Assembly (NCBI GenBank): GCA_002269645.1
Contig: NIVC01000029.1
Span: 558,001-622,000 of the forward strand
Origin: Macrostomum lignano
Taxonomy: Eukaryota
Length of the DNA stretch: 64,000 nucleotides
Direction of reading: 5' to 3'
The position numbers and the translations under genes are program-made. Numbering within the stretch: position 1 is the stretch's first letter; each line of letters begins with the position of its first letter. The notes beneath the pieces were generated by a model, which was not told where the DNA came from, made no database searches, and saw nothing but the letters and a program-made list of their open reading frames with translations. Positions 1 through 63,910 of the stretch are shown piece by piece.

Positions 1-40
1 TGTGAGAAATTTTTTTTTATTTTAGTTTCTACAGGGCTGT

Positions 41-1062
41 TTGGTCGAGCAGTTTACATTGGATTCTCTTCGAGGGAAGCGAGTTTTTTTTCTGTACGGC
101 GAAAGTCAAAAGCGACAAAAGAAGCTGGAATCTGCCGTCGTCTATTATGGCGGAAGCGTTGCTTCGTTTTTTTCAAATGAGGTGTGTAGTTTTTGCAATG
201 CATTCGTTGTTTTTGTTTGTTGCTTGTTAATAGGGCAGATTAGAGACGTTGATAGATTTTTTGTAGCTATGGGCTCGTATTTTTTGCTTTTCCAGGTTGA
301 TTTAATCATCGCTGACGATTCCGCTGTCTCCATTGAAGCTAAACAATCTTTTTCGGAGTTTTCTAGGGGTTTCACCATGCAGCAGAGAGCCGTTACGCAA
401 ACTTCGAGTTCGCAATGCAGAATTGTCAAAACATTCGAAGATATTTTGACGAAAGCTCGCTTGCTGCAAATACCTGTCTACACTCCGGCAATATTTCGAG
501 ATCGAATTCGCGATCAAGTTTCTCAACACGAGCTGTGCCAGAAAACTATTTCTTCAGGGAGGTTTGCCGAAGAAGATCGGAATTTGACCCCACCGGCCGT
601 TGTTGTTACGGATGCCCAGCATTTGCTGAGACCAATCTTCAAAGATAACATTGATGTCGTCGACATTTTTGCAAACCCAAGGGCTAATAATAACGATGAA
701 AAAAATCGTCAAAAGCCTGACGGCAAAGAAAAACGGAAAGGTCGGTGTGAAAACTGTCGCGAAGCCTACGACGACTTTAATCAGCACATAACATTAAGCC
801 AAAAGCACCAAGATTTCGTTTCGAATAAAAAAATTTTACTGAAATCGACCAAATCATTTCAACTCTTCCGACGCTAGACAGCGCCCTAAATGAAGCGACT
901 CAAAAGGCTACCGCTCCTATGACACATCATGACACGAAAAAACCGGATTCGAAAGCACTACCTAACATATTTCAGCAAAATGACGGTGATAGACGCCAAG
1001 CCGCATCGCTTGGCGAAAATCGTCAGTCTGCTCGCAAATACGTCGACACCGAGTCCAAAAAA
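41..1062 (+). CDS. DBF4: DBF4/ASK-like protein exons (BRCT motif N, motif M, DBF4-type zinc finger): exon ~35-181, intron 182-295, exon 296-1062 with a 1-nt frameshift in the A7 run at 827-833; 5' end upstream of the window
   Basis: LRGKRVFFL..LESAVVYYGGSVASFFSNE|VDLIIAD resembles motif N. PAVVVTDAQHLLRPIF resembles motif M. KRKGRCENCREAYDDFNQHITLSQKHQDFV is a CCHH zf-DBF. The in-frame GT..AG intron 182-295 is phase 0. The -1 frame continues NFTEIDQIISTL (zf-DBF tail) and stays open to the donor AAA|GTGAGT at 1062/1063. Confidence 0.8.
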
Positions 1063-1127
1063 GTGAGTTTCGTTTAATGATCTCAAAATAGCTAGCTGCA
1101 TGCAACTCAATTGCTGTAGAGAAGTTC

Positions 1128-4100
1128 TTAAAAGGTGGTCCACCTAAACTACAGACACAACTGAAGCAGCTCTCTCAGTCTGTTTGGGGCTTTGACTTTT
1201 ATAAGGTGGTCCACCTAACCTACAGAAACAACTGAAGCAGCTTTCTCAGTCTGTTTGGGGCTTTGACTCTTAAAAGGTGGTCCACCTAACCTACAGACAC
1301 AACTGAAGCAGCTCTCTCAGTCTGTTTGAGGGTCACACGGATACACGGCAGCGGTTTTGAATTTAAGCTTCCGACTTTGACTTGTCTTTTTATTCTCTAA
1401 TTTCCTAGGAGCCTGAGGTCGAATTTCGTTCCCGCCAAATCGAACGCACTGGTGCCTCAAAAAGAGGGCGGAAATCGCGAAGCCGTTCGCGCTCTGCATC
1501 ACGCCTTGATGAAGGCGCTCAGTCGCACAACGCTACCGCGGATGCAGGCGCTACTCCAGCCTCGAAGAAGGCCGCATCGCCTGGTGAAAATCGTCGGTCT
1601 ACTCGCAAATACGTCGACACCGAGTCCAGAAAAGTGAGTTTCGCTTGATGATCTCAAAGTAGCTAGCTGCAACTCAATTGCTGTAGAGAAGCTGGTCCAC
1701 CTAACCTACAGAACAGACGCAACTGAAGCAGCTCTCTCAGTCTGTTTGGGGCTTTGACTCTTGGAAGGTGGTCCACCTAACCTACAGACACAACTGAAGC
1801 AGCTCTCTCAGTCTGTTTGGGGCTTTAACTCTTAAAAGGTGGTCAACCTAACCTACAGACACAACTGAAGCAGCTTTCTCAGTCTGTTTGGGGCTTTGAC
1901 TTTTATAAGGTGGTCCACCTAACCTACAGACACAACTGAAGCAGCTCTCTCAGTCTGTTTGGGGCTTTGACTCTTAAAAGGTGGTCCACCTAACCTACAG
2001 GCACAACTAAAGCAGCTCTCTCAGTCTGTTTGAGGGTCACACGGATACACGGCAGCGGTTTTGAATTTAAGCTTCCGACTTTGACTTGTCTTTTTATTCT
2101 CTAATTTCCTAGGAGCCTGAGGTCGAATTTCGTTCCCGCCAAATCGAACGCACTGGTGCCTCAAAAAGAGGGCGGAAATCGCGAAGCCGTTCGCGCTCTG
2201 CATCACGCCTTGATGAAGGCGCTCAGTCGCACAACGCTACCGCGGATGCAGGCGCTACTCCAGCCTCGAAGAAGGCCGCATCGCCTGGTGAAAATCGTCG
2301 GTCTACTGGCAAATCCGTCGACACCGAGTCCAGAAAAGTGAGTTTCGCTTGATGATCTCAAAGTAGCTAGCTGCAACTCAATTGCTGTAGAGAAGCTGGT
2401 CCACCTAACCTACAGACACAACTGAAGCAGCTCTCTCAGTCTGTTTGGGGCTTTGACTCTTGGAAGGTGGTCCACCTAACCTACAGACACAACTGAAGCA
2501 GCTCTCTCAGTCTGTTTGGGGCTTTAACTCTTAAAAGGTGGTCAACCTAACCTACAGACACAACTGAAGCAGCTCTCTCAGTCTGTTTGGGGCTTTGACT
2601 TTTATAAGGTGGTCCACCTAACCTACAGACACAACTGAAGCAGCTCTCTCAGTCTGTTTGGGGCTTTGACTTTTATAAGGTGGTCCACCTAACCTACAGA
2701 CACAACTGAAGCAGCTCTCTCAGTCTGTTTGGGGCTTTGACTTTTATAAGGTGTCCACCTAACCTACAGACACAACTGAAGCAGCTCTCTCAGTCTGTTT
2801 GGGGCTTTGACTCTTGGAAGGTGGTCCACCTAACCTACAGACACAACTGAAGCAGCTCTCTCAGTCTGTTTGGGGCCTTGGCTGTCAGAGCTGTCTTGAA
2901 AGTTTAGTGCGGGAATGTTTCCGTTTCTTGGAATGCAATCAGAACAGATTCTTAGAAAGCGAGCTGGTCCACCATGAGATCAGAATGTCTGCACTGTGTA
3001 AATGAATGGTCTCTAGGCATTCCGACTCAGATTATCGCCTAGTAGTGCTGTAGAGAAGGTGGTCCACCTAACCTACAGACACAACTGAAGCAGCTCTCTC
3101 AGTCTGTTTGAGGGTCACACGGATACACGGCAGCGGTTTTGAATTTAAGCTTCCGACTTTGACTTGTCTTTTTATTCTCTAACTTCCTAGGAGCCTGAGG
3201 TCGAATTTCGTTCCCGCCAAATCGAACGCACTGGTGCCTCAAAAAGAGGGCGGAAATCGCGAAGCCGTTCGCGCTCTGCATCACGCCTTGATGAAGGCGC
3301 TCAGTCGCACAACGCTACCGCGGATGCAGGCGCTACTCCAGCCTCGAAGAAGGCCGCATCGCCTGGTGAAAATCGTCGGTCAACTGGCAAATCCGTCGAC
3401 ACCGAGTCCAGAAAAGTGAGTTTCGCTTGATGATCTCAAAGTAGCTAGCTGCAACTCAATTGCTGTAGAGAAGCTGGTCCACCTAACCTACAGACATCAA
3501 CTGAAGCAGCTCTCTCAGTCTGTTTGGGGCTTTGACTTTTATAAGGTGGTCCACCTAACCTACAGAAACAACTGAAGCAGCTCTCTCAGTCTGTTTTGGG
3601 CTTTGACTTTTATAAGGTGGTCTACCTAACCTACAGACACAACTGAAGCAGCTTTCTCAGTCTGTTTGGGGCTTTGACTTTTATAAGGTGGTCCACCTAA
3701 CCTACAGACACAACTGAAGCAGCTCTCTCAGTCTGTTTGGGGCTTTGACTTTTATAAGGTGGTCCACCTAACCTACAGACACAACTGAAGCAGCTCTCTC
3801 AGTCTGTTTGAGGGTCACACGGATACACGGCAGCGGTTTTGAATTTAAGCTTCCGACTTTGACTTGTCTTTTTATTCTCTAACTTCCTAGGAGCCTGAGG
3901 TCGAATTTCGTTCCCGCCAAATCGAACGCACTGGTGCCTCAAAAAGAGGGCGGAAATCGCGAAGCCGTTCGCGCTCTGCATCACGCCTTGATGAAGGCGC
4001 TCAGTCGCACAACGCTACCGCGGATGCAGGCGCTACTCCAGCCTCGAAGAAGGCCGCATCGCCTGGTGAAAATCGTCGGTCTACTGGCAAATCCGTCGAC

Positions 4101-5030
4101 ACCGAGTCCAGAAAAGTGAGTTTCGCTTGATGATCTCAAAGTAGCTAGCTGCAACTCAATTGCTGTAGAGAAGCTGGTCCACCTAACCTACAGACACAAC
4201 TGAAGCAGCTCTCTCAGTCTGTTTGGGGCTTTGAATCTTGGAAGGTGGTCCACCTAACCTACAGACACATCTGAAGCAGCTTTCTCAGTCTGTTTGGGGC
4301 TTTGACTCTTGGAAGGTGGTCCACCTAACCTACAGACACAACTGAAGCAGCTCTCTCAGTCTGTTTGGGGCTTTAACTCTTAAAAGGTGGTCAACCTAAC
4401 CTACAGACACAACTGAAGCAGCTCTCTCAGTCTGTTTGGGGCTTTGACTTTTATAAGGTGGTCCACCTAACCTACAGACACAACTGAAGCAGCTCTCTCA
4501 GTCTGTTTGGGGCTTTGACTCTTGGAAGGTGGTCCACCTAACCTACAGACACAACTAAAGCAGCTCTCTCAGTCTGTTTGGGGCTTTGGCTCTCAGAGCT
4601 GTCTTGAAAGTTTAGTGCGGGAATGTTTCCGTTTCTTGGAATGCAATCAGAACAGATTCTTAGAAAGCGAGCTGGTCCACCATGAGATCAGAACGTCTGC
4701 ACTGTGTAAATGAATGGTCTCAAGGCATTCCGACTCAGATTATCGCCTAGTAGTGCTGTAGAGAAGGTGGTCCACCTAACCTACAGACACAACTGAAGCA
4801 GCTCTCTCAGTCTGTTTGGGGCTTTGACTCTTGGAAGGTGGTCCACCTAACCTACAGACACAACTGAAGCAGCTCTCTCAGTCTGTTTGGGGCTTTGGCT
4901 CTCAGAGCTGTCTTGAAAGTTTAGTGCGGGAATGTTTCCGTTTCTTGGAATGCAATCAGAACAGATTCTTAGAAAGCGAGCTGGTCCACCATGAGATCAG
5001 AACGTCTGCACTGTCTAAATGAAGGGTGTC
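1128..5030 (+). repeat. Intronic satellite in element A: 71-bp units (GGTGGTCCACCTAACCTACAGACACAACTGAAGCAGCTCTCTCAGTCTG...) plus ~240-bp long units
   Basis: The period is 71 bp (e.g. GGTCCAC at 2611 and 2682). Long variants lie at ~2820-3058, ~4530-4765 and ~4840-5030. The array fills introns 1063-1408, 1634-2112, 2338-3190, 3416-3890 and 4116-5149. Confidence 0.95.
1409..4115 (+). CDS. Four near-identical 225-bp phase-0/0 exons (1409-1633, 2113-2337, 3191-3415, 3891-4115), each encoding a 75-aa basic Ser/Arg-rich repeat
   Basis: Each exon is bounded by TTCCTAG| and |GTGAGT and has an open frame EPEVEFRSRQIERTGASKRGRKSRSRSRSASRLDEG...ENRRSTRKYVDTESRK. The 3' third matches the end of exon 296-1062. 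Confidence 0.7.
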
Positions 5031-5149
5031 TAAACGTTTTGACTTAGATTATCGCGTTGTAGTGCTTCAGAGAATTGACTTATTGACTTTTCAGGAAAAA
5101 TGAGCTAATGAGTATATCTAAGCTATGTAACTTGCTGTTTATTTTTCAG

Positions 5150-8092
5150 GTTTGCGATAGAGACGGCGATGCTACCAAAGCAAGGATAGACGTTGCTTTC
5201 GATTTAGTAGATGATGATTCGTTTGTGGACAAAAATCTTACGGTAGTAGACGATATTCTTGGTGGAAGGTTGCACTCAGCTTTAAGGGACATTGCAAATA
5301 CGAGTATACTACCTGAGGACGCTGAACTCGAGGAAGAAGATGGTGATGAAGATTATTATTTGGAGGAAGTCTGGTCTGATGATTTAGTTCCGTCCCAAGC
5401 GAAACTTAAGCATGAGAAGAAGAGGCATTGCTGCCTCTTTTGCGGAGAAATGTTTTCGAAGATCAGAAGGCATCTTATTCGGGCACACTCGAAGGAAATG
5501 TGTGTACAGCGCGCCCTCGCATTTAATCCTAAGTCTGATAGTAAGTTTTTGAAATAAGTTTTTTATGTAGGTCCTCATAGTAGTATTTAGTTTGTCTGAA
5601 AATAATTATCTGTTCATATTTTTTTCAGAATATGACCAGGAATTTGATCGCTTGCGCTTTCGAGGAGATTACGAACATAACATAAAAGTTATGACCCAGG
5701 AGAAGGAGGGAGGAATCATTGTGTGTCGCGAAAGAAGTTCTTCGGACATGAAAGATAATGAAGTTTCGTATTTGCCGTGCATTCACTGTTTTGGATTTTT
5801 TCGTAAAACTGAGTTAAGCAGGCATGTTCAGCGCTGCCGCTTTGTCGTAAATGTCAGCGATTTGAACAGGCGCACAGAAGCTGTCAGTGCAGGACGCTGC
5901 CTTCTCCTTGCATCATGCTTTCCGGCGAAATATCCGTCCAAATTTATTGAACTTATTAATAAAATGAAGGTAGACTCATGTAGCAAAGTAGCTCAATCAG
6001 ACAAGCTTATAATGGAACTTGGCTACTACGCCTATGAAGGTTTTACATCCGGAAAGACAGGAAAGAAAATTGTAACTGCGAAAATGCGTGAAATGTCGAG
6101 ATTACTTATGTCAGCTCGTGAAATTATGGGCGATCCCAGCGCTTGTCTTGACGATTTGCTGAAGCCATCATCATTTGATTTAGTTGTTGAGGCGACTCGA
6201 AATGTAGCGAAATTTACGGCCCAAGAAGATGCTCAGATTTGCGATTCTTTTTCTATTCCTTCGATGGCACTTAAGTGCGGGTTTTCTCTGAAGCTGGCTG
6301 CTGAACTGTCGTTAGTACGTGCCCTGAAATGCGAAATGCCCGAAGTAGCTCAGGAGCGACGCAACTTCATCACTCTGTATGAAACATCATGGAGCCGTAA
6401 AATATCTTCGATTGCACTTTTGTCCTTGAAAGAAAGAAAAATTGACAAGGGTCAGACATTGCCGTTAACTAGCGACATTCAGTTAATCACGAAGCACATT
6501 AACGAATATTTAAGCCACATCGACACGGAAAAGCTAAAAAGCAGCCCTTCTTACTGGAAAGAGGTGGCCGAATATGTTGCGATTCGTTTGTCTATTTTCA
6601 ACAAGCGCCGGGCGTCTGAGCCCTTCAAGCTGCGAGTTTCGGCGTGGCAGAAAGCAAGATCATGCAAAGATGTTGATGATACAACATTATCTGCGCTAAG
6701 TGAATTAGAAAAGCAAATGCTTTACCGGTTGACTATCGTTAATGTTCGAGGTAAGAGAGCACAGCGACCGGTTCCTCTGCTAGTTTCGAATGAGATTGCT
6801 GAAATTATCGATGAGCTCATTCGCACAAGACACCACGCTTCAAGTCCTTACGTATTCTGCAGTAGTGGAAGTTTGGGATATATATCCCCATTCGTTGCGC
6901 GCACAAATGTTGTCTCCAGTTGTCAAGGGCTCCAGTTCCCTGCTCGTCTATCTTCGACCAACCTTCGAAAATACATTGCCACTGTCTCTCAGATCCTTGA
7001 AATGAGAGAAAATGAGCTCGGATGGCTCTCCAACCATCTTGGACATAGCCTTAATGTTCACCATAATTTCTATCGATTGCATGAAAACACTATTGAGCTT
7101 GCTAAAGTAGGCAAGCTACTTCTGGCTATCGAGGCCGGTAGATTCGACCAGCTTAAAGGCAAAACTATCGAAGAGATTGATGTTAACGACATCGAAATTG
7201 ACTATGACATTGACGATAAGTCAGATGCAAAAAAAGATGATTTGAACGAATCCGGTGATGTGGAAGCCTCAATAGGCTCACAGGCTCGAGAATTAAAACG
7301 TGGTGACCAAAAGAGTCAAGCACCTCCTGAGAATAATGGAGCTCGTATCCAAGCTAAGGAATTTGAGGACGAGTCAATTTATCACGAAGGTTCTGTCGAC
7401 TTTCGCGGAGCCCCCCTGTCCATCAAGCAAGTCGAAAAAAAGAAGAATCGATTAGCTGTGCTCGACTCAGATGAATATGAAAGCGAAGTAGACAAAGACG
7501 ATTCAGACTACCAACCGACGAAAAAAACCAGAAAAGTGCAGAAAGCTAGAGCAAACGAAAGGCGGATTCGAAGGACGACTAAGCCAAAGGGTGCGACAGC
7601 AACAACGACTAATAACAAAAGCGAGCCAGGACATGGACAAGAGGACCCACAGAAGGACAAAAGCGAGCCAGGACCCGGACAAGAGGACCCACAGAAGGAC
7701 AAAAGCGAGCCAGGACCCGGACAAGAGGACCCACAGAAGGACAAAAGCGAGCCAGGACCCGGACAAGAGGACCCACAGAAGGACAAAAGCGCTCCTAGTT
7801 CGGAAGGTAAGGACAAAATGGGAACTGGGGGAAGAAAAAAACCAAAGTTGATTTCAGTTACTTCAATCCATTTCAGAAGTCAAGAAAAAAACTAATTCAG
7901 GAGCACATTGCGTGGAACAAAGACGAAAATGAGGCAATTAACCGCGCGATAGAAAAGATCGAAGACGGCAAAGTACCTGGTTTTGCAGCCCTTGGAGAGC
8001 TAAAAGCACGCGAACCTGCACTCCAGTCACGATCGATCCATAAAATAAAAACGAAGTTTTTCAATGAAATGAAAAAACGCGGCATTTTGTGA
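5150..8092 (+). CDS. CryptonV-like tyrosine recombinase: exon 5150-5540, intron 5541-5628, exon 5629-~7890, and a C-terminal Myb/SANT-like segment 7901-8092 in another frame
   Basis: Zn-binding motifs HCCLFC..IRRHLIRAH and YLPCIHCFGFF..LSRHVQRC. Tyrosine recombinase motifs FNKRRASE (Arg), VRGKRAQRPVPLL (Lys), STNLRKYIAT (xxxR box) and LSNHLGHSLNVHHNFYRL (His, catalytic Tyr). The phase-1 intron joins NPKSD-K-YDQEFDRLR. The tail reads HIAWNKDENEAI..GKVPG..EPALQSRSIHKIK. Confidence 0.85.
7618..7790 (+). repeat. 42-bp coding tandem repeat x4 (KSEPGPGQEDPQKD) in the recombinase tail
   Basis: AAAAGCGAGCCAGGACCCGGACAAGAGGACCCACAGAAGGAC is repeated in frame. Confidence 0.95.
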
Positions 8093-8284
8093 CTAAACGC
8101 TTTATGATTGCTAACACTAAGATTAAAAAGCATCTATTAGTTTAGCTGACAAGAAATACCTGTTCACTATCGATAGCATAGCGATGGCTTTTGGGGGCGG
8201 TCCAAGTTTGGGACGCCAAAATGAGTATGAGGGGCGCCAATTTTTAAGCTGGGGGTGCAAAAAACGTGTAGGGGGGGAATGCGA

Positions 8285-8700
8285 GTCGCCGTTTTAAAAA
8301 TGCTTCAATTTCTTGTATCTGTTTGATACAATTTCCATTTTAATAACTGTCGCCGTTTTAAAAATGCTTCAATTTCTTGTATCTGTTTGATACAATTTCC
8401 ATTTTAATAACTGTTGCCCTTTTAAAAATGCTTCAACTTCTTGTACTCCCTATGACTTTTTTAACTAATGCAATCCTAAGTTTGTTAAACGTGTAGTTTA
8501 AGAATGTACTTCCGGACTTAAATTAGTTTCAATGACTTTGCAGTTAGTTTAATTAGGTTTAAATCTTTTGCGTTAAGGCAAGCGAAATGATGCGGTATTT
8601 ATTTTCAAAATGCTTCAATTTCTTATATCTGTTTGATACAATTTCCATTTTAATAACTGTTGCCGTTTTAAAAATGCTTCAACTTCTTGTATCCCTGAGT
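8285..8700 (+). repeat. 64-bp subterminal direct repeats of element A
   Basis: GTCGCCGTTTTAAAAATGCTTCAATTTCTTG... occurs at 8285 and 8349, partially at ~8413, and again at ~8605-8695. Confidence 0.8.
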
Positions 8701-9654
8701 GTGCGTTGTTTTTCTTTCGTAACTAATGCAGTTTAACCCATAGTTTAGTAAAGCTAAATAAATTCGTTTGAACCAGGGTTTTTTTAATAAAATGGAATCG
8801 TAAACCTTTTTTATCTTCTGTTTCTTGAGAATTTCTGTTTTAATTAGCCCAAAATAACAGTTTGAAACTCATAAATTTTCTACAAAGAAAGAGGTCTAAC
8901 TAAACCAACTGTTTTTTTGCGGTCCACCTAACCCGGTCCCCAAAACGTAGTTAGTGAACCGCCACAGTTTCCACGAACTGGCTATTCCGTCAAGTTAACA
9001 AAAAGATAACCCTAGCTAGCCTTTCGCGTTGTCAAAACAGACTCTATTTTTTAACCGGAATTGCGTGGTCCACGTAACGCATTAACATAACTCAGGTCCC
9101 GCTAAACACACAGACAGTCGTAAGAGTGTCTGTCTGTCTGCCAGCCTAAGTGAGTCACTGTGTCTGCCAGTTCAAAACTTTGTTTACTGCTATACAGTGC
9201 TATACAAAGGCCATTCCAATCTTATTTTCAAGTGCTACTCCCGTTTTGAAATAGTTGTATACAAAAACAACCCATTGTATAGCCTGGGGTCACAATAAGC
9301 CGCTTTGTAAAGCGTTTTTTTCACTTAGCTGGGCTCATTTGGCCCAATAGCACCACAGTGTCTTATACGACTGAAGCGTTGATGCAGCTTGCAGCGACAC
9401 AAAGCACCCACAGCGCACTCAGCAGCTGTAGCAATATAAACCAGCATTATTTAGCCTTATAATGTTGTATAACAGATAAAAGTTTGGCAACAACATGATC
9501 GCATACAGTAAATACAGAAAGAGTAACACACAAATTTGGTCTAGATACTACCGACCAGTTATATAGAGAGAGCAAAATTGATTTGTTAGATTTTTAGTAC
9601 TATAATGATACTAAGCCGTCGTTTGTCTGTGTGGCCGCCATTTTAAATGAATTA

Positions 9655-15364: not shown

Positions 15365-15631
15365 ATGAGTCCACAACAGTTTCGCATTGTCAAACGGTGC
15401 CTGCCTCTGTCATTGCTGATGATGCTGGTCCTGTGCACAGTCGGTACACTCGATGCGACATCGGACTTTGCAAACGACCAAGTTATTGAAGAACCGGACA
15501 GCGAGCTGCAGGGACTTTCGGACGCCGAAGACAATCTGCAGGGTGAGCAGCAGATTGACGAGGACAATTTCGATGATGAAGACCTCAAAGACTCGGTCGC
15601 GGTCAAGTATCGTAGAGATAAAATTGGATAG
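15365..15631 (+). CDS. Small secreted prepropeptide-like ORF (88 aa)
   Basis: Hydrophobic signal-like N-terminus (CLPLSLLMMLVLCTVGTLDA), a Asp/Glu-rich pro-region, dibasic RR, then DKIG-stop. Confidence 0.5.
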   Translation: MSPQQFRIVKRCLPLSLLMMLVLCTVGTLDATSDFANDQVIEEPDSELQGLSDAEDNLQGEQQIDEDNFDDEDLKDSVAVKYRRDKIG

Positions 15632-19635: not shown

Positions 19636-20644
19636 TATTATGGCGCCCGGAAGAAAAATGATTGATTGCCACAACGGGACACATGGTGGGGTGGAGGGAC
19701 AAAGCATTAGCATCCAGGAGGACACATAGTTGCCGGAAAAAGCAACAAGCAGAATCCTCCAAGAGAAGAAGAGAAGGGTTATTTTTTAGGGGATTGAAGA
19801 ATGGCTCTTGTAGGACCTCCCTCTTGCCTGTAGGTTGCAGTAGACAGTACAGAGACTCAAAAATAGCAACGAGACTTTCCTCATCAAACAGTAGCTATAG
19901 GCTATAACAAAAGCAGTCACATGACTTTGACAAAGCGACGGCATCATAGTATAGAGATGGATTGAGAATGGAAACTATGTTATATAGTATATACCCTATG
20001 CAGAGCGTGAGGCAGAAGTGCATATATAATGAATCATTAATTAATTTTGTTTCTGAATTTTCTAACATGATTTCTTATACTCTTGGCTTTAAATACACTG
20101 AAGTATTCTATCTCTCAGACCTTTCAGGTCTGCAACTGTTACCCTCCTTGTGTGTCATACAGGATGTCAACTGATATATAAGAGATTAGATACTAAATTA
20201 AAAATAAACTCGCGGATGTGGCCTGAGGACTGCAGTATACAAACACAGCAGTTTAGTAACGCAGTACCTTATATTCGAATTTGTTAAAGAAAAGAGCAAT
20301 GAGTTTCAGATAAAGGCGCAGTTTAAAGACGCAGATGATGTGGTTTACGCTTGTACTAAGCTGATTCGTGTGGCTAAGCTAAGACTCTGAAATTAGGGTG
20401 GGGGTGGGGCAGCAAAATGTACACTCTCCTGACATGGCAGTTTCCATCTATGCTACCTATCTGAGTTCATTCTGACCCCGCCCAAAAACTCTATGCTGCG
20501 CAGCTTAGGAGTGTCGAAGCCTTAGCAATAGGAAAACTACTCAGAATATACGATTGGAGTTCGTTCGTACGCATATACATAGCTAGTCTTATTATCTGTT
20601 ACTATAATGAGCGGACAGGCAAATGGAAAAAATACATGACAGGC

Positions 20645-20878
<234 letters not shown>

Positions 20879-21589
20879 TCTTACGACTGTCTGTGTGTTT
20901 AGCGGGACCTGAGTTATGTTAATGCGTTACGTGGACCACGCAATTCCGGTTAAAAAATAGAGTCTGTTTTGACAACGCGAAAGGCTAGCTAGGGTTATCT
21001 TTTTGTTAACTTGACGGAATAGCCAGTTCGGGGAAACTGTGGTGGTTCACTAACTACGTTTTGGGGACCGGGTTAGGTGGACCGCAAAAAAACAGTTGGT
21101 TTAGTTAGACCTCTTTCGTTGTAGAAAATTTATTGCTTTAAACTGTTCTTTTGAACTAATTAAAACAGAAATTCTCAAAAAGAACAGATAAAAGGGTTAC
21201 GACGTCATTTAATGAAAATATCCCAAGTTCAAACCAATTTATTTAGCATTATTAATCGGGTTAATCGGGTTAAACAAATGTACGATCGCATTAGTTAGTT
21301 GCGTCGCGTGAATACAAGAAGGTGAATGAAAATAAAGCATTTTGAAAATAAATACCGAATCATATCAAATACTAACTGTAAACTCATTAAAACTAATTTA
21401 GGTCAAAATGTATGCTTCAAATACATGTTAACAAACGGAAGATTCCATTAGTTAAAAAAGGTCATCCGAGTACGAGCCTACAAGAAGTTGAAGGGCATTT
21501 TTAATAACGACAAAAGTTCCTAAAACTGAAATTAAATTTATTTGACTACATCAGTCCTATTATACTGAATGAGTTAATGAGCAATCATA

Positions 21590-21922
21590 TGCTAAGCCAA
21601 TCATTTTACCGACTTTCATCTTTTCGTTCACGCAGATGATGGCTTAATCTTCTTATTTTTTCTACGAAATATTCTCCTGGACCTTCCCTGCCTCCGTGGT
21701 CCGGGACCGCTTCTGTTATTGATCTGTCATTGCCTCTCTCACGAATTTCAGCTTACCCAGCCATCGAATCCGCTTTCGTCAGCTCAGCTCTATGATGAAC
21801 CTTTCTATATTTCTCCTCAATTTAGTGGTTTGAATCTTCTTTTACAGTTCGTTTTAACCTTCATCTCGGTGAAACGCAGTCAGTCTCGTCGAGCTCAGGC
21901 GAACAAAATCAACCACAGGCTC
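21590..21922 (-). pseudogene. Degenerate exon remnant of element B (repeat-exon start joined to recombinase-tail-like fragments)
   Basis: The minus strand reads TTTGTAG|GAG CCT GTG GTT GAT TTT (EPVVDF, cf. EPEVEF) followed by a stop. AGCTGACGAAAGCGGATTCGATGG resembles 7549-7573. Confidence 0.6.
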
Positions 21923-21954
21923 CTACAAAGGTAGAAAATAAAATTAACTGACAA

Positions 21955-24900
21955 TCAAACAGACACAGAAATCTGTTCCAGTTGTGTCTGTAGGTTATGT
22001 GGACCACCTGAGAGCCAGAGCCTCAAACAGACAGAGAAATCTGTTCGAGTTGTGTCTGTAGGTTAGATGGACCAGCTATTCTACAGCACTTCTAGGCGAT
22101 AATCTGAGCCAGGAATCTCCAAGAGCCTCTCGTTACACATCCAGATGTTCTGCCTTGATGCTAGACTAGCCCACTTTCTAGGAATCTGTTCTGATTGCAT
22201 TCTAACAAACTGAAGCATTCTCGGCACTAAACTTTCTCGGCGGCTCTGAGAGCCAGAGCCTCAAACAGACAGAGAAATCTGTTCGAGTTGTGTCTGTAGG
22301 TTAGGTGGACCAGCTACTCCACAGCACTTCTAGGCGATAATCTGAGCCAGGAATCTCCGAGAGCCTCTCGTTACACATCCAGATGTTCTGCCTTGATGCT
22401 GGACTAGCTCACTTTCTAGGAATCTGTTCTGATTACGAGCTTCATTCTAACAAACTGAAGCATTCTCGGCACTAAACTTTCTCGGCGGCTCTGAGATCCA
22501 GAGCCTCAAACAGACAGAAATCTGTTCGAGTTGTGTCTGTAGGTTAGGTGGACCAGCTACTCCACAGCACTTCTAGGCGATAATCTGAGCCAGGAGTCTT
22601 CGAGAGACTTTCGTTACACATCCAGATGTTCTGCCTTGATGCTGGACTAGCTCACTTTCTAGGAATCTGTTCTGATTGCATTCTAACAAACTGAAGCATT
22701 CTCGGCACTAAACTTTCTCGGCGGCTCTAAGAGCCAGAGCCTAAACAGACAGAGAAATCTGCTCGAGTTGTGTCTGTAGGTTAGGTGGACCACCTTCTGA
22801 GAGACAAAGCCTCAAACAGACTGAGAGAGCTGCTTCAGTTCTGTCTGTAGGTTATGTGGACCATTTAAGAGCCAGAGCCTCAAACAGACAGAGAAATCTG
22901 TTCGAGTTGTGTCTGTAGGTTAGGTGGACCAGCTATTCTACAGCACTTCTAGGCGATAATCTGAGCCAGGAATCTCCGAGAGCCTCTCGTTACACATCCA
23001 GATGTTCTGCCTTGATGCTGGACTAGCTCACTTTCTAGGAATCTGTTCTGATTGCATTCTAACAAACTGAAGCATTCTCGGCACTAAACTTTCTCGGCGG
23101 CTCTGAGAGCCAGAGCCTCAAACAGACAGAGAAATCTGTTCGAGTTGAGTCTGTAGGTTAGGTGGACCAGCTACTCCACAGCACTTCTAGGCGATAATCT
23201 GAGCCAGGAGTCTTCGAGAGACTTTCGTTACACATCCAGATGTTCTGCCTTGATGCTGGACTAGCTCACTTTCTAGGAATCTGTTCTGATTACGAGCTTC
23301 ATTCTAACAAACTGAAGCATTCTCGGCACTAAACTTTCTCGGCGGCTCTGAGATCCAGAGCCTCAAACAGACAGAAATCTGTTCGAGTTGTGTCTGTAGG
23401 TTAGGTGGACCAGCTACTCCACAGCACTTCTAGGCGATAATCTGAGCCAGGAGTCTTCGAGAGACTTTCGTTACACATCCAGATGTTCTGCCTTGATGCT
23501 GGACTAGCTCACTTTCTAGGAATCTGTTCTGATTGCATTCTAACAAACTGAAGCATTTTCTGCACTAAACTTTCTCGGCGGCTCTAAGAGCCAGAGCCTA
23601 AACAGACAGAGAAATCTGCTCGAGTTGTGTCTGTAGGTTAGGTGGACCACCTTCTGAGAGACAAAGCCTCAAACAGACTGAGAGAGCTGCTTCAGTTCTG
23701 TCTGTAGGTTATGTGGACCATTTAAGAGCCAGAGCCTCAAACAGACAGAGAAATCTGTTCGAGTTGTGTCTGTAGGTTAGGTGGACCAGCTATTCTACAG
23801 CACTTCTAGGCGATAATCTGAGCCAGGAATCTCCGAGAGCCTCTCGTTACACATCCAGATGTTCTGCCTTGATGCTGGACTAGCTCACTTTCTAGGAATC
23901 TGTTCTGATTGCATTCTAACAAACTGAAGCATTCTCGGCACTAAACTTTCTCGGCGGCTCTGAGAGCCAGAGCCTCAAACAGACAGAAATCTGTTCGAGT
24001 TGTGTCTGTAGGTTAGGTGGACCAGCTACTCCACAGCACTTCTAGGCGATAATCTGAGCCAGGAATCTCGAGAGCCTCTCGTTACACATCCAGATGTTCT
24101 GCCTTGATGCTGGACTAGCTCACTTTCTAGGAATCTGTTCTGATTGCATTCTAACAAACTGAAGCATTCTCGCACTAAACTTTCTCGGCGGCTCTAAGAG
24201 CCAGAGCCTCAAACAGACAGAGAAATCTGTTCGAGTTGAGTCTGTAGGTTAGGTGGACCAGCTACTCCACAGCACTTCTAGGCGATAATCTGAGCCAGGA
24301 ATCTCCGAGAGCCTCTCGTTACACATCCAGACGTTCTGCCTTGATGCTGGACTAGCTCACTTTCTAGGAATCTGTTCTGATTACATTCTAACAAACTGAA
24401 GCATTCTCGGCACTAAACTTTCTCGGCGGCTCTGAGATCCAGAGCCTCAAACAGACAGAAATCTGTTCAAGTTGTGTCTGTAGGTTAGGTGGACCAGCTA
24501 CTCCACAGCACTTCTAGGCGATAATCTGAGCCAGGAGTCTTCGAGAGACTTTCGTTACACATCCAGATGTTCTGCCTTGATGCTGGACTAGCTCACTTTC
24601 TAGGAATCTGTTCTGATTGCATTCTAACAAACTGAAGCATTCTCGGCACTAAACTTTCTCGGCGGCTCTAAGAGCCAGAGCCTAAACAGACAGAGAAATC
24701 TGCTCGAGTTGTGTCTGTAGGTTAGGTGGACCACCTTCTGAGAGACAAAGCCTCAAACAGACTGAGAGAGCTGCTTCAGTTCTGTCTGTAGGTTATGTGG
24801 ACCATTTAAGAGCCAGAGCCTCAAACAGACAGAGAAATCTGTTCGAGTTGTGTCTGTAGGTTAGGTGGACCAGCTATTCTACAGCACTTCTAGGCGATAA

Positions 24901-27900
24901 TCTGAGCCAGGAATCTCCGAGAGCCTCTCGTTACACATCCAGATGTTCTGCCTTGATGCTGGACTAGCTCACTTTCTAGGAATCTGTTCTGATTGCATTC
25001 TAACAAACTGAAGCATTCTCGGCACTAAACTTTCTCGGCGGCTCTGAGAGCCAGAGCCTCAAACAGACAGAGAAATCTGTTCGAGTTGAGTCTGTAGGTT
25101 AGGTGGACCAGCTACTCCACAGCACTTCTAGGCGATAATCTGAGCCAGGAGTCTTCGAGAGACTTTCGTTACACATCCAGATGTTCTGCCTTGATGCTGG
25201 ACTAGCTCACTTTCTAGGAATCTGTTCTGATTACGAGCTTCATTCTAACAAACTGAAGCATTCTCGGCACTAAACTTTCTCGGCGGCTCTGAGATCCAGA
25301 GCCTCAAACAGACAGAAATCTGTTCGAGTTGTGTCTGTAGGTTAGGTGGACCAGCTACTCCACAGCACTTCTAGGCGATAATCTGAGCCAGGAGTCTTCG
25401 AGAGACTTTCGTTACACATCCAGATGTTCTGCCTTGATGCTGGACTAGCTCACTTTCTAGGAATCTGTTCTGATTGCATTCTAACAAACTGAAGCATTTT
25501 CTGCACTAAACTTTCTCGGCGGCTCTAAGAGCCAGAGCCTAAACAGACAGAGAAATCTGCTCGAGTTGTGTCTGTAGGTTAGGTGGACCACCTTCTGAGA
25601 GACAAAGCCTCAAACAGACTGAGAGAGCTGCTTCAGTTCTGTCTGTAGGTTATGTGGACCATTTAAGAGCCAGAGCCTCAAACAGACAGAGAAATCTGTT
25701 CGAGTTGTGTCTGTAGGTTAGGTGGACCAGCTATTCTACAGCACTTCTAGGCGATAATCTGAGCCAGGAATCTCCGAGAGCCTCTCGTTACACATCCAGA
25801 TGTTCTGCCTTGATGCTGGACTAGCTCACTTTCTAGGAATCTGTTCTGATTGCATTCTAACAAACTGAAGCATTCTCGGCACTAAACTTTCTCGGCGCCT
25901 CTGAGAGCCAGAGCCTCAAACAGACAGAGAAATCTGTTCGAGTTGAGTCTGTAGGTTAGGTGGACCAGCTACTCCACAGCACTTCTAGGCGATAATCTGA
26001 GCCAGGAATCTCCGAGAGCCTCTCGTTACACATCCAGATGTTCTGCCTTGATGCTGGACTAGCTCACTTTCTAGGAATCTGTTCTGATTACATTCTAACA
26101 AACTGAAGCATTCTCGGCACTAAACTTTCTCGGCGGCTCTGAGATCCAGAGCCTCAAACAGACAGAAATCTGTTCGAGTTGTGTCTGTAGGTTAGGTGGA
26201 CCAGCTACTCCACAGCACTTCTAGGCGATAATCTGAGCCAGGAGTCTTCGAGAGACTTTCGTTACACATCCAGATGTTCTGCCTTGATGCTGGACTAGCT
26301 CACTTTCTAGGAATCTGTTCTGATTGCATTCTAACAAACTGAAGCATTTTCTGCACTAAACTTTCTCGGCGGCTCTAAGAGCCAGAGCCTAAACAGACAG
26401 AGAAATCTGCTCGAGTTGTGTCTGTAGGTTAGGTGGACCACCTTCTGAGAGACAAAGCCTCAAACAGACTGAGAGAGCTGCTTCAGTTCTGTCTGTAGGT
26501 TATGTGGACCATTTAAGAGCCAGAGCCTCAAACAGACAGAGAAATCTGTTCGAGTTGTGTCTGTAGGTTAGGTGGACCAGCTATTCTACAGCACTTCTAG
26601 GCGATAATCTGAGCCAGGAATCTCCGAGAGCCTCTCGTTACACATCCAGATGTTCTGCCTTGATGCTGGACTAGCTCACTTTCTAGGAATCTGTTCTGAT
26701 TGCATTCTAACAAACTGAAGCATTCTCGGCACTAAACTTTCTCGGCGGCTCTGAGAGCCAGAGCCTCAAACAGACAGAGAAATCTGTTCGAGTTGAGTCT
26801 GTAGGTTAGGTGGACCAGCTACTCCACAGCACTTCTAGGCGATAATCTGAGCCAGGAGTCTTCGAGAGACTTTCGTTACACATCCAGATGTTCTGCCTTG
26901 ATGCTGGACTAGCTCACTTTCTAGGAATCTGTTCTGATTACGAGCTTCATTCTAACAAACTGAAGCATTCTCGGCACTAAACTTTCTCGGCGGCTCTGAG
27001 ATCCAGAGCCTCAAACAGACAGAAATCTGTTCGAGTTGTGTCTGTAGGTTAGGTGGACCAGCTACTCCACAGCACTTCTAGGCGATAATCTGAGCCAGGA
27101 GTCTTCGAGAGACTTTCGTTACACATCCAGATGTTCTGCCTTGATGCTGGACTAGCTCACTTTCTAGGAATCTGTTCTGATTGCATTCTAACAAACTGAA
27201 GCATTTTCTGCACTAAACTTTCTCGGCGGCTCTAAGAGCCAGAGCCTAAACAGACAGAGAAATCTGCTCGAGTTGTGTCTGTAGGTTAGGTGGACCACCT
27301 TCTGAGAGACAAAGCCTCAAACAGACTGAGAGAGCTGCTTCAGTTCTGTCTGTAGGTTATGTGGACCATTTAAGAGCCAGAGCCTCAAACAGACAGAGAA
27401 ATCTGTTCGAGTTGTGTCTGTAGGTTAGGTGGACCAGCTATTCTACAGCACTTCTAGGCGATAATCTGAGCCAGGAATCTCCGAGAGCCTCTCGTTACAC
27501 ATCCAGATGTTCTGCCTTGATGCTGGACTAGCTCACTTTCTAGGAATCTGTTCTGATTGCATTCTAACAAACTGAAGCATTCTCGGCACTAAACTTTCTC
27601 GGCGGCTCTGAGAGCCAGAGCCTCAAACAGACAGAAATCTGTTCGAGTTGTGTCTGTAGGTTAGGTGGACCAGCTACTCCACAGCACTTCTAGGCGATAA
27701 TCTGAGCCAGGAATCTCCGAGAGCCTCTCGTTACACATCCAGATGTTCTGCCTTGATGCTGGACTAGCTCACTTTCTAGGAATCTGTTCTGATTGCATTC
27801 TAACAAACTGAAGCATTCTCGGCACTAAACTTTCTCGGCGGCTCTAAGAGCCAGAGCCTCAAACAGACAGAGAAATCTGTTCGAGTTGAGTCTGTAGGTT

Positions 27901-30900
27901 AGGTGGACCAGCTACTCCACAGCACTTCTAGGCGATAATCTGAGCCAGGAATCTCCGAGAGCCTCTCGTTACACATCCAGACGTTCTGCCTTGATGCTGG
28001 ACTAGCTCACTTTCTAGGAATCTGTTCTGATTACATTCTAACAAACTGAAGCATTCTCGGCACTAAACTTTCTCGGCGGCTCTGAGATCCAGAGCCTCAA
28101 ACAGACAGAAATCTGTTCAAGTTGTGTCTGTAGGTTAGGTGGACCAGCTACTCCACAGCACTTCTAGGCGATAATCTGAGCCAGGAGTCTTCGAGAGACT
28201 TTCGTTACACATCCAGATGTTCTGCCTTGATGCTGGACTAGCTCACTTTCTAGGAATCTGTTCTGATTGCATTCTAACAAACTGAAGCATTCTCGGCACT
28301 AAACTTTCTCGGCGGCTCTAAGAGCCAGAGCCTAAACAGACAGAGAAATCTGCTCGAGTTGTGTCTGTAGGTTAGGTGGACCACCTTCTGAGAGACAAAG
28401 CCTCAAACAGACTGAGAGAGCTGCTTCAGTTCTGTCTGTAGGTTATGTGGACCATTTAAGAGCCAGAGCCTCAAACAGACAGAGAAATCTGTTCGAGTTG
28501 TGTCTGTAGGTTAGGTGGACCAGCTATTCTACAGCACTTCTAGGCGATAATCTGAGCCAGGAATCTCCGAGAGCCTCTCGTTACACATCCAGATGTTCTG
28601 CCTTGATGCTGGACTAGCTCACTTTCTAGGAATCTGTTCTGATTGCATTCTAACAAACTGAAGCATTCTCGGCACTAAACTTTCTCGGCGGCTCTGAGAG
28701 CCAGAGCCTCAAACAGACAGAGAAATCTGTTCGAGTTGAGTCTGTAGGTTAGGTGGACCAGCTACTCCACAGCACTTCTAGGCGATAATCTGAGCCAGGA
28801 GTCTTCGAGAGACTTTCGTTACACATCCAGATGTTCTGCCTTGATGCTGGACTAGCTCACTTTCTAGGAATCTGTTCTGATTACGAGCTTCATTCTAACA
28901 AACTGAAGCATTCTCGGCACTAAACTTTCTCGGCGGCTCTGAGATCCAGAGCCTCAAACAGACAGAAATCTGTTCGAGTTGTGTCTGTAGGTTAGGTGGA
29001 CCAGCTACTCCACAGCACTTCTAGGCGATAATCTGAGCCAGGAGTCTTCGAGAGACTTTCGTTACACATCCAGATGTTCTGCCTTGATGCTGGACTAGCT
29101 CACTTTCTAGGAATCTGTTCTGATTGCATTCTAACAAACTGAAGCATTTTCTGCACTAAACTTTCTCGGCGGCTCTAAGAGCCAGAGCCTAAACAGACAG
29201 AGAAATCTGCTCGAGTTGTGTCTGTAGGTTAGGTGGACCACCTTCTGAGAGACAAAGCCTCAAACAGACTGAGAGAGCTGCTTCAGTTCTGTCTGTAGGT
29301 TATGTGGACCATTTAAGAGCCAGAGCCTCAAACAGACAGAGAAATCTGTTCGAGTTGTGTCTGTAGGTTAGGTGGACCAGCTATTCTACAGCACTTCTAG
29401 GCGATAATCTGAGCCAGGAATCTCCGAGAGCCTCTCGTTACACATCCAGATGTTCTGCCTTGATGCTGGACTAGCTCACTTTCTAGGAATCTGTTCTGAT
29501 TGCATTCTAACAAACTGAAGCATTCTCGGCACTAAACTTTCTCGGCGCCTCTGAGAGCCAGAGCCTCAAACAGACAGAGAAATCTGTTCGAGTTGAGTCT
29601 GTAGGTTAGGTGGACCAGCTACTCCACAGCACTTCTAGGCGATAATCTGAGCCAGGAATCTCCGAGAGCCTCTCGTTACACATCCAGATGTTCTGCCTTG
29701 ATGCTGGACTAGCTCACTTTCTAGGAATCTGTTCTGATTACATTCTAACAAACTGAAGCATTCTCGGCACTAAACTTTCTCGGCGGCTCTGAGATCCAGA
29801 GCCTCAAACAGACAGAAATCTGTTCGAGTTGTGTCTGTAGGTTAGGTGGACCAGCTACTCCACAGCACTTCTAGGCGATAATCTGAGCCAGGAGTCTTCG
29901 AGAGACTTTCGTTACACATCCAGATGTTCTGCCTTGATGCTGGACTAGCTCACTTTCTAGGAATCTGTTCTGATTGCATTCTAACAAACTGAAGCATTTT
30001 CTGCACTAAACTTTCTCGGCGGCTCTAAGAGCCAGAGCCTAAACAGACAGAGAAATCTGCTCGAGTTGTGTCTGTAGGTTAGGTGGACCACCTTCTGAGA
30101 GACAAAGCCTCAAACAGACTGAGAGAGCTGCTTCAGTTCTGTCTGTAGGTTATGTGGACCATTTAAGAGCCAGAGCCTCAAACAGACAGAGAAATCTGTT
30201 CGAGTTGTGTCTGTAGGTTAGGTGGACCAGCTATTCTACAGCACTTCTAGGCGATAATCTGAGCCAGGAATCTCCGAGAGCCTCTCGTTACACATCCAGA
30301 TGTTCTGCCTTGATGCTGGACTAGCTCACTTTCTAGGAATCTGTTCTGATTGCATTCTAACAAACTGAAGCATTCTCGCACTAAACTTTCTCGGCGGCTC
30401 TAAGAGCCAGAGCCTCAAACAGACAGAGAAATCTGTTCGAGTTGAGTCTGTAGGTTAGGTGGACCAGCTACTCCACAGCACTTCTAGGCGATAATCTGAG
30501 CCAGGAATCTCCGAGAGCCTCTCGTTACACATCCAGATGTTCTGCCTTGATGCTGGACTAGCTCACTTTCTAGGAATCTGTTCTGATTACATTCTAACAA
30601 ACTGAAGCATTCTCGGCACTAAACTTTCTCGGCGGCTCTGAGATCCAGAGCCTCAAACAGACAGAAATCTGTTCGAGTTGTGTCTGTAGGTTAGGTGGAC
30701 CAGCTACTCCACAGCACTTCTAGGCGATAATCTGAGCCAGGAGTCTTCGAGAGACTTTCGTTACACATCCAGATGTTCTGCCTTGATGCTGGACTAGCTC
30801 ACTTTCTAGGAATCTGTTCTGATTGCATTCTAACAAACTGAAGCATTCTCGGCACTAAACTTTCTCGGCGGCTCTAAGAGCCAGAGCCTAAACAGACAGA

Positions 30901-36900: not shown

Positions 36901-37400
36901 TAGGTTAGGTGGACCAGCTACTCCACAGCACTTCTAGGCGATAATCTGAGCCAGGAATCTCCGAGAGCCTCTCGTTACACATCCAGATGTTCTGCCTTGA
37001 TGCTGGACTAGCTCACTTTCTAGGAATCTGTTCTGATTGCATTCTAACAAACTGAAGCATTCTCGGCACTAAATTTTCTCGGCGGCTCTGAGAGCCAGAG
37101 CCTCAAACAGACAGAGAAATCTGTTCGAGTTGTGTCTGTAGGTTAGGTGGACCAGCTACTCCACAGCGCTTCTAGGCGATAATCTGAGCCAGGAGTCTTC
37201 GAGAGACTTTCGTTACACATCCAGATGTTCTGCCTTGATGCTGGACTAGCTCACTTTCTAGGAATCTGTTCTGATTGCATTCTAACAAACTGAAGCATTC
37301 TCGGCACTAAACTTTCTCAGCGGCTCTGAGAGCCAGAGCCTCAAACAGACAGAGAAATCTGTTCGAGTTGTGTCTGTAGGTTAGGTGGACCAGCTTCTCT
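21955..37400 (-). repeat. 15.4-kb higher-order satellite: ~238-bp monomers with 71+68-bp short-unit pairs every 3-5 monomers
   Basis: It is the diverged reverse complement of element A's long and short units. There are 16 short-unit pairs, mostly at ~850- or ~1086-bp spacing, and about 55 long monomers (estimate). Confidence 0.97.
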
Positions 37401-37460
37401 ACAGCAATTGAGTTGCAGGCCCTGCAGCTAGCTACTTTGAGATCATCAAACGAAACTCAC

Positions 37461-37600
37461 TTTTCTGGACTCGGTGTCGACGGATTTGCGAGCAGACTGA
37501 TGATTTTCACCAGGCGATGCGGCTTCTTCGATTTCGCAGTGGCTTTTTGCGACGGTGTTTTTTTAGTTTTTATTTTAGGCTTGGCGTCCTTTTTTGCGGG
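37461..37600 (-). pseudogene. Exon remnant of element B homologous to the 3' end of element A's exons (…VDTESRK|GTGAGT)
   Basis: Reverse complement of the 997-1062 and 1560-1633 segments, with the donor at 37460. The upstream part is Lys-rich and lacks the DBF4 zinc finger. Confidence 0.7.
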
Positions 37601-39142: not shown

Positions 39143-39345
<203 letters not shown>

Positions 39346-39879
39346 GCAGGCAGGCAGGTATAGAAAAGCAGATATCATTAAAGGTAAGGATGGCTAATTT
39401 AATATTGCAGCTCTGCTCTGCAGAAATCTGTTTTCGTGCTCAGGTGCTCAGATGCTTACTGTAGGCATTTACTTGCAAAATTAAGAATGCTGATATTCCA
39501 CTTGCTCCTATAATTGAGGCTTCACTATTGGCCACTATTGGCCTCACTCTTTAATGAGTTCTCCACTTGAGCATTCTTTTTTCGATTAGTTAAGCTTGTT
39601 GGTGCCCTTAATGGTTTGTTCTCTTCTTCATTACCTGTGCAATGCTATCCTATGTACAGGTGGGATTTGCATGGCATACATACTTTCGCTATTAGCCTTC
39701 AAAATGTAGATCCGAAGAAGCAGATATACGATAACTATTTTTTTCCTATTGGTGTGAAAAAAATTGCCAGAAAATATAGCGAAAGTGTAATTGTAAAAAG
39801 AGCGATAGATGATGTATTTAAGAATGGCGTTAGAGGGTGTCAGAAGAAGATAATTTGAGAGTGTCAGGGAATTAAATTG

Positions 39880-56726: not shown

Positions 56727-63910
<7,184 letters not shown>

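Follow-up and report, generated by a model that had tools for sequence, protein, structure and literature searches.

In the model put forward by Goodwin for Cryptons, recombination takes place between a short terminal sequence of the element and an identical target (PMC3212892), and live insertions and excisions of CryptonF-1_cRei in Chlamydomonas fit this model (PMC9977147). For some CryptonV families the target is said to be a microsatellite: a preliminary description of the DNA considered here had suggested as much, and the statement is indeed made in a passage of Kojima 2022 (PMC8869645), which cites Kapitonov & Jurka (Repbase Rep 2012). Here we analyse a 64-kb stretch (the window) of contig NIVC01000029.1 of the flatworm Macrostomum lignano (assembly GCA_002269645.1), in which two related elements, A and B, lie within (TCTG)n/(CAGA)n microsatellites. 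It is strongly supported that these elements, and those of a second family, C, integrate into pre-existing (TCTG)n/(CAGA)n tracts in one orientation and one phase. We propose further, with a probability of about 0.78, that A and B belong to one Crypton-type family of DNA transposons, A as an autonomous and B as a non-autonomous member, with a zinc-finger tyrosine recombinase as their only enzyme and with circle-mediated integration into (TCTG)n.

Coordinates are those of the window unless given as L001, a locus that is the window's contig extended leftward by 9,082 bp. The extension holds the left end of A (L001 1905), so that A is a complete 16.3-kb element with (TCTG)n on both flanks. Its principal parts are:

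window −7177 (= L001 1905) to 9126, plus strand: element A, autonomous, 16,304 bp, of which the right 9.1 kb (1..9126) is in the window
L001 1513–1904: (TCTG)n before the left end of A, about 390 bp
L001 1905–1931: left terminus of A, TTCTA-CTGTCTGTGTGTTTACGTGGAC, directly after (TCTG)n
5150..7895, plus strand: probable tyrosine recombinase gene, with a C2H2 zinc-finger exon from about 5150 and a main open reading frame (ORF) at 5592–7895
9095..9117, plus strand: right terminal inverted-repeat core of A, GGTCCCGCTAAACACACAGACAG
9118..9126, plus strand: TCGTAAGAG, element-borne, the outer imperfect part of the inverted repeat, holding the 'spacer' of the preliminary description
9127..9140, plus strand: right flank of A, TG(TCTG)3, a remnant of the target microsatellite

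The corresponding parts of B are:

20878..39143, minus strand: element B, non-autonomous, 18,266 bp, with ends 92–94% identical to those of A
20638..20877, plus strand: (CAGA)n flank, left in the window, adjoining the right end of B in element orientation
39117..39143, plus strand: the other terminus of B, GTCCACGTAAACACACAGACAG-TAGAA, with (CAGA)n next
39144..39357, plus strand: (CAGA)n flank on the other side of B

B has the left 1.6 kb of A (94% identity) and its right 0.39 kb (92.5%) in common with it, and contains no recombinase ORF; the two elements lie 11.7 kb apart in opposite orientations, in a region dense in minisatellites. On re-reading, three A/B ends proved to be as the preliminary description gave them. 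At A, positions 9111–9140 read CAGACAG-TCGTAAGA-GTGTCTG-TCTGTCTG with unique DNA beyond (so short a right flank, holding TG(TCTG)3 only, calls for some caution), and the minus strand of B reads CAGACAG-TCGTAAGA-GTGTCTT-AGTG... (20878–20893). The observations that B is flanked on both sides by (CAGA)n of the same orientation (20638–20877 and 39144–39357), and that the two copies have the same polarity relative to the microsatellite, likewise stand, and the left end of A is now seen to be preceded by (TCTG)n as well. Two details need amendment: the mirrored arrangement at B is present, but its arms match at only 5/7 positions against 6/7 in A, and the inverted terminus described as 20/23 identical is there with an identity that we recount as 19/22 for the core. 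An alternative pair at the right end of A, ACAGACA/TGTCTGT, matches at 7/7 positions around a 10-nt spacer, in A alone.

The terminal inverted repeats of A/B end CTGTCTG/CAGACAG. The 14-mer AAACACACAGACAG occurs in three exact copies in the 64 kb, all at A/B ends (0.04 expected; none of 100 shuffles reaches three), and matches to the terminal 21-mer with up to three mismatches are confined, in the window, to those same three ends. A look-up of further copies of A through a small annotated ORF returned this locus only.

Family C is represented by a recombinase (P0003) that is 50% identical to that of A and carries an N-terminal chromodomain. Three copies were located:

L002 8867–17650: family C copy, 8.8 kb, encoding P0003
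L007 1767–17658: family C copy, 15.9 kb
L008 8870–47287: family C copy, 38.4 kb

The copies are 97–99% identical (98–99% in the ends and the recombinase region). Their loci give no BLAST hits to one another outside the flanking microsatellites, from which it follows that the three insertions are independent. All three nevertheless have identical junctions, (TCTG)n-TGTTAGTGTATGTGTGTTTGCGTAGAC ... GTCTATGTAACCACACATACACTAGTA-TG(TCTG)n, with TCTG on the gene strand. A terminus pattern, TA(C/G)TGT(C/A)TGTGTGTTT(A/G)CGT(G/A)GAC, is common to both families, and the termini of A/B and C are homologous.

Read on the gene strand, all five insertions (A, B and the three of C) have (TCTG)n on both sides. 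In every case ...TCTG closes the left flank and TG TCTG opens the right one, so that the joined flanks are 2 nt out of phase. Between the inverted-repeat core and the pure repeat stand TTCTA and TCGTAAGAG in A/B, and TGTTAG and CTAGTA in C. Within a family each of these stretches is invariant; those at the two ends are unlike each other, and the empty site described below has none of them. They must therefore be element DNA; they align as the outer part of the imperfect inverted repeat, with a 3–4-nt insertion at the right end of A/B. The only sequence present in both junctions and in the target is TG(TCTG)k. The short direct repeat at both ends, equal to the target, that is typical of Cryptons is thus present as TG(TCTG)k; a target that is repetitive in its own right is compatible with more than one length of it.

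Did the elements enter these microsatellites, or make them? Two homeologous contigs, L009 and L011, encode an identical copy of a small annotated gene that lies between A and B (15366–15632). Both contigs run collinear with the window to the left and to the right of B, and in them the sequence at window 20869 is joined to that at 39127 through a single (CAGA)n tract:

L009 15674–16052: empty-site (CAGA)n, 379 bp
L011 15945–16307: empty-site (CAGA)n, 363 bp

The unique flanks of these empty sites, and the CACTAAGA variant units interspersed in them, match the locus of B. Since (CAGA)n is uninterrupted in L009 and L011, B entered a pre-existing microsatellite and the repeat was not made by the element. 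The opposite idea, that the element generates the repeats (by slippage from its CTGTCTG ends, for instance, or as tails added at insertion), would make sense of the resemblance of the inverted-repeat ends to the repeat unit and of the very unequal flanks, which range from 14 to 554 bp. It is largely refuted by tracts of 363–379 bp in homeologs that have the same variant units and no element, as well as by unoccupied (TCTG)n elsewhere (e.g. L002 24815–24838), and is now scarcely credible.

The homeologs bear also on whether A and B might be a local inverted segmental duplication that carried its microsatellite along. The two elements are indeed inverted and only 11.7 kb apart in one window, and both of their microsatellites contain a variant unit, TCTTAGTG; against this, B appears in the homeologs as a precise element-sized insertion within the repeat, A and B differ in sequence outside the microsatellites, and three more insertions, those of family C, lie on other contigs. 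We give a duplication almost no credence. The claim of orientation-specific integration in (CAGA)n made in the preliminary description is thus upheld by five concordant insertions of two families and an empty site, and integration specific for the microsatellite and for its orientation is well supported by that empty site, the insertions of family C and the recombinase model discussed below.

At the locus of A, the homeologs lack a larger block of 18 kb, which extends from L001 413 to window 9338. Besides A and its microsatellite, the block holds a GC-rich, exon-like stretch of 1.1 kb and 0.2 kb of unique sequence; in L009 and L011 the flanks of the missing block are joined through 5 nt. Either a deletion in the homeologs or a larger insertion in the window's contig would account for it. 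As the block exceeds the element, L009 and L011 are uninformative on the target of A.

TCTTAGTG, a variant unit of 8 nt that reads CACTAAGA on the opposite strand, is found within (TCTG)n at L001 1513–1904, at window 20638–20877 and in both empty homeologs, and differs from two normal units at three adjacent positions. We considered that it might be an excision footprint, and dropped the idea: the unit is native to empty sites and has no convincing derivation from the ends of either family.

How might an element come to lie in the repeat always in the same orientation? In the circle model that we favour, the element would leave as a double-stranded circle, of the kind that characterizes Cryptons, in which its imperfect inverted ends, ...CACACAGACAG-TCGTAAGAG and TTCTA-CTGTCTGTGTG..., flank a core TG(TCTG)k, such as the 6-bp TGTCTG; the circle junction would then read ...CAGACAGTCGTAAGAG-TG(TCTG)k-TTCTACTGTCTG..., with a small k. 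The recombinase would exchange strands between this core and the identical word in any (TCTG)n tract, homology of the non-palindromic overlap setting the orientation. Because TGTCTG is asymmetric, the fixed polarity would be explained without further assumption, and a circle with abutted ends and a TGTCTG-type core would reproduce every junction observed. Such a mechanism is the one put forward by Goodwin for Cryptons (PMC3212892). The outermost 10–11 nt of the inverted repeats resemble the microsatellite (CTGTCTGTGTG compared with CTGTCTGTCTG, and TGTATGTGTG compared with TGTCTGTCTG, at 10/11 and 8/10 matching positions), and are probably the core-type binding sites, which would also let the enzyme sit on the target. 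It is plausible, judging from these resemblances, that the enzyme recognises the CAGACAG word in element and target alike, as the preliminary description supposed.

That description had read CAGACAG-TCGTAAGA-GTGTCTG differently, as a loxP/FRT-type site in its own right, in which element and microsatellite each supply one of two inverted 7-bp arms and strands are exchanged within the 8-bp TCGTAAGA. The overlap of a conservative tyrosine recombinase must occur in both junctions and in the target. TCGTAAGA is found at the right junction only; neither the left junction nor the empty site contains it, and the 8-bp spacer therefore cannot be the overlap. The arrangement at the right junction of A, with arms that match at 6/7 positions and are 8 bp apart, or at 7/7 and 10 bp apart, does have an analogue in family C (ACATACA-CTAGTA-TGTCTGT, 6/7), and a spacer of this length would suit the 6–8 bp of tyrosine recombinases (PMC3212892). 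The spacer is nonetheless element DNA, TCGTAAGA(G) being identical in A and B at different loci, whereas the left junction has TTCTA and the empty target has neither sequence. At the left junctions the arm of the element repeats the microsatellite in direct and not in inverted orientation. A matching half-site can be provided by the target on only one of the two sides. The arm that the microsatellite supplies at B matches at just 5/7 positions, and an inverted pair arises automatically wherever an inverted repeat ending in CTGTCTG adjoins (TCTG)n. A loxP-like exchange at the junction itself therefore seems to us very improbable.

Our preferred circle model makes the recombinase the agent of movement, and the gene content of the elements agrees with this. 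In the 8.8-kb copy of family C, all ORFs of at least 100 amino acids belong to the recombinase gene or are of low complexity, and no other gene was found; a six-frame scan of the unique 2.4 kb of A gave no Pfam matches; and neither the ORF listing of C nor that scan revealed a DDE (transposase) or reverse-transcriptase domain. Besides the recombinase, the sole additional domain in A is a DBF zinc finger:

41..877, plus strand: ORF with a DBF-type zinc finger, internal to A (Pfam PF07535, E = 3.4e-9)

The start of this ORF is BRCT-like and some gene models (P0033) fuse it to the recombinase; it looks like a captured or fused fragment of a host gene. The recombinase is the only gene common to both families.

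An alternative would be cut-and-paste transposition by a DDE transposase acting in trans, with a 2-bp TG target duplication and with the recombinase as a passenger or as a resolver of intermediates. Clear inverted repeats and subterminal repeat arrays are found in many DDE elements, and there are two extra nucleotides (TG) at the junctions of both families. Neither A nor C yielded a DDE or reverse-transcriptase domain, however, and the recombinase is the sole gene that unites two families with homologous termini and the same target. Strict orientation on a non-palindromic repeat would be unexpected from a symmetric mechanism of inverted repeats and DDE transposase, and the TG offset is constant in sequence, with orientation fixed relative to the repeat, where a duplication of fixed length at varied sites was to be expected. 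We regard transposition of this kind as very unlikely, and return to the recombinase as the probable enzyme.

What is the evidence that it is one? The best protein matches to ORF 5592–7895 are Macrostomum lignano gene models at 99–100% identity. In 21 aligned homologues, of bivalve, beetle and metagenomic origin, R339/R340, K388, R459, H482 and Y494 are invariant or nearly so, in the order characteristic of tyrosine recombinases, and two zinc-finger motifs are present at the N-terminus. An AlphaFold model built from the homologue alignment has pLDDT values of about 85–95 over most of residues 120–480 (mean 67); its six best fold matches in the PDB are all tyrosine recombinases (among them XerA, 5hxy, and the integron integrase IntI, 2a3v; Foldseek probability 1.0, E ~3e-3), and phage integrases and nudivirus VLF-1 come first among the matches in a viral structure library. 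That the shared gene is a tyrosine recombinase is well supported by motifs and modelled fold, though not proven. CryptonA and CryptonI recombinases match DUF3504 (E <= 8e-12 for representatives; PMC3212892), whereas none of the 21 family members does so at E <= 0.1; with its clear inverted repeats as well, the family is distinct from CryptonA/I.

Several points tell against the proposal as a whole. The window protein has no Pfam match at E <= 1, the marginal match to Pfam Phage_integrase involves one member of the 21 (E = 0.021), and Pfam and PDB sequence searches gave no significant match, so that the identity of the enzyme depends on the motifs and on a model of moderate confidence (mean pLDDT 67, E ~3e-3). 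Classical animal Cryptons are without terminal repeats (PMC3212892), as against inverted repeats of about 22 nt here. The circle model is drawn from the junctions, and neither a circle junction nor an excision footprint nor any biochemical activity is among the observations. The position of the crossover in the repeat and the value of k are left free by the junctions, where the additional TG would also fit a 2-bp duplication of the target. A clean empty site of A was sought and not found, the homeologs lacking the larger 18-kb block. The junctions, finally, are a sample of five insertions and not of the whole genome.

Both families are filled with repeats of a second motif:

1126..5074, plus strand: arrays of a 71-bp repeat in A, each unit with the terminus-like GGTCCACCTAAC-CTACAGACA
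21872..37406, minus strand: about 15.5 kb of 238-bp higher-order tandem repeats in B, related to the 71-bp units of A and with the same motif

The motif GGTCCACCTAA (allowing one mismatch) occurs 60 times in L001, where 0.29 occurrences are expected, and 21 times in L002 (0.28 expected), inside the elements only. Copies near the left end are on the minus strand; all others, among them those in each of the 71- and 83-bp units, are on the plus strand. The motif is also the inner half of the terminal inverted repeat. To judge by this layout, the GGTCCACCTAA copies are probably accessory arm-type binding sites. In family C the internal arrays of 83-bp units, which carry the motif GGTCCAGCTAA, vary greatly in extent among copies, and the 15.5-kb array of B is the same phenomenon. 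We also considered the 71-bp unit as a copy of the circle junction, and discarded this, its alignment score being only about 2.5 standard deviations above shuffles, which is not significant.

An end-like internal sequence, GGTCCACGTAAACAC, is present in B (37955–37974) and in A (L001 3015–3069), followed some 20 nt on by (CAGA)4 in the polarity opposite to that of the flanks; it may be a relic of an old nested or rearranged end.

Relatives of the recombinase in other organisms provide some information on targets. In Holotrichia oblita (L013 989–14032) there are two tandem copies of a related element, 90–92% identical over 5.7 kb, each ending by an imperfect (AC)n (6599–6650 and 13978–14030), which suggests repeated insertion into one microsatellite. 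At a single firefly locus, (TG)22 lies about 1.2 kb beyond the ORF. A metagenomic relative, P0007 (about 5.3 kb; L004–L006), is flanked not by TCTG but by direct repeats of about 155 bp, which belong to a GC-rich host repeat ending in an (AGGGG)n-like sequence; the target of P0007 may be that host repeat. The copies of it are:

L004 9539–9705: P0007 direct repeat
L004 14874–14999: P0007 direct repeat
L005 5117–5273: P0007 direct repeat

The loci from Sinanodonta (L003) and a fish (L012) have no informative flanks, and the Crassostrea protein P0022 has no contig on record. Being single loci each, those of Holotrichia, the firefly and the metagenomic relative give a hint, of little weight, that target specificity is a property of the whole clade.

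Three further features lie to the right of B. At 44140–44507 and 45640–46007 there are 368-nt inverted repeats, 98% complementary, 1.1 kb apart and unrelated to A/B, which are probably the ends of another transposon with long terminal inverted repeats. A host gene for an MFS_2-type transporter (46488–52569; PF13347, E = 3.7e-30) has several exons, and long minisatellites in its introns. A further host gene, an ORF at 57574–58119, resembles a GCN5-type acetyltransferase by eye, and has no Pfam match.

Microsatellite targeting is not new in kind, having been reported already for Cryptons, albeit thinly documented. The value of the present locus is that, through the empty site and the five concordant junctions, it provides a clean case, at the level of sequence, of a DNA transposon that uses a tetranucleotide microsatellite as a safe haven; outside retrotransposons, the passages of the literature cited here offer only a database note for such targeting, together with crustacean nimaviruses by analogy. 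It explains why some (CAGA)n tracts of M. lignano are split by 9–38 kb of repeat-rich DNA, and indicates that repeats resembling recombinase sites can grow into very large arrays within such elements. As a lead towards a tool it is real but early, and value is conceivable: the enzyme appears intact in several recent copies, the cargo is large and the target word occurs in many genomes. More speculatively, and only as a tentative suggestion, the elements may represent an unnamed animal clade of zinc-finger tyrosine-recombinase transposons, without DUF3504, with inverted termini and kilobase arrays of accessory sites, each family adapted to a single microsatellite: (TCTG)n in Macrostomum, perhaps (AC)n/(TG)n in beetles. 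The M. lignano copies would, on this view, still be active. If this is true, eukaryotes would offer a natural integrase that can insert tens of kilobases, in a predetermined orientation, at a simple repeat of many genomes.

Among other known systems, DIRS and Ngaro elements, which are tyrosine-recombinase retrotransposons with reverse transcriptase/RNase H genes, long repeats that are split or inverted and an internal complementary region, are readily set apart, for A and C show no reverse-transcriptase domain or ORF and the termini are inverted repeats of about 22 nt. Microsatellite-specific non-LTR (long terminal repeat) retrotransposons (Kojima & Fujiwara 2004, as summarized in a passage of PMC8869645) are likewise orientation-specific in one motif and follow a safe-haven strategy, but they move by reverse transcriptase and endonuclease, are 5'-truncated and have no inverted repeats, whereas here both ends are defined and there is no reverse transcriptase. 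In endogenous nimaviruses (PMC10871703), insertion into a telomere repeat, (TAACC)n, is linked to a tyrosine recombinase that bears a C2H2 zinc-binding region; they differ in being giant viral genomes of crustaceans with recombinases stated to be unrelated to Cryptons, and the likeness is one of description only. By analogy with lambda-type integrases, the putative inverted core sites would surround a short asymmetric overlap that sets orientation and would be accompanied by accessory sites of a second motif, though the target here is a repeat with many registers and the accessory motif is in kilobase arrays.

The closest parallels remain the Cryptons. CryptonV elements are tyrosine-recombinase DNA transposons with microsatellite-specific insertion in some families, according to the same passage of PMC8869645, and this trait is seen here in 5/5 insertions in (TCTG)n and in the empty site. 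CryptonV is described there from cnidarians, whereas our family is from a flatworm with relatives in bivalves, beetles and a fish. No named cnidarian protein is among the recombinase matches, including those of a profile search with the trimmed core (8,000 candidates scored per search), which added the fish and more metagenome matches; when P0003 was used for a further protein search, nothing but P0003 itself was retrieved, its low-complexity regions having probably swamped the search. With the classical Cryptons (CryptonF/S/A/I) the elements agree in having a tyrosine recombinase only, a low copy number, non-autonomous derivatives and a terminal word equal to the target, here the TCTG unit (Goodwin 2003; Kojima & Jurka 2011, PMC3212892; PMC9977147). 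They differ in that the classical elements have no terminal inverted repeats and use targets that are words of 4–6 bp, whereas those described here have inverted repeats of about 22 nt, dozens of subterminal and internal repeats, and a microsatellite as their target.

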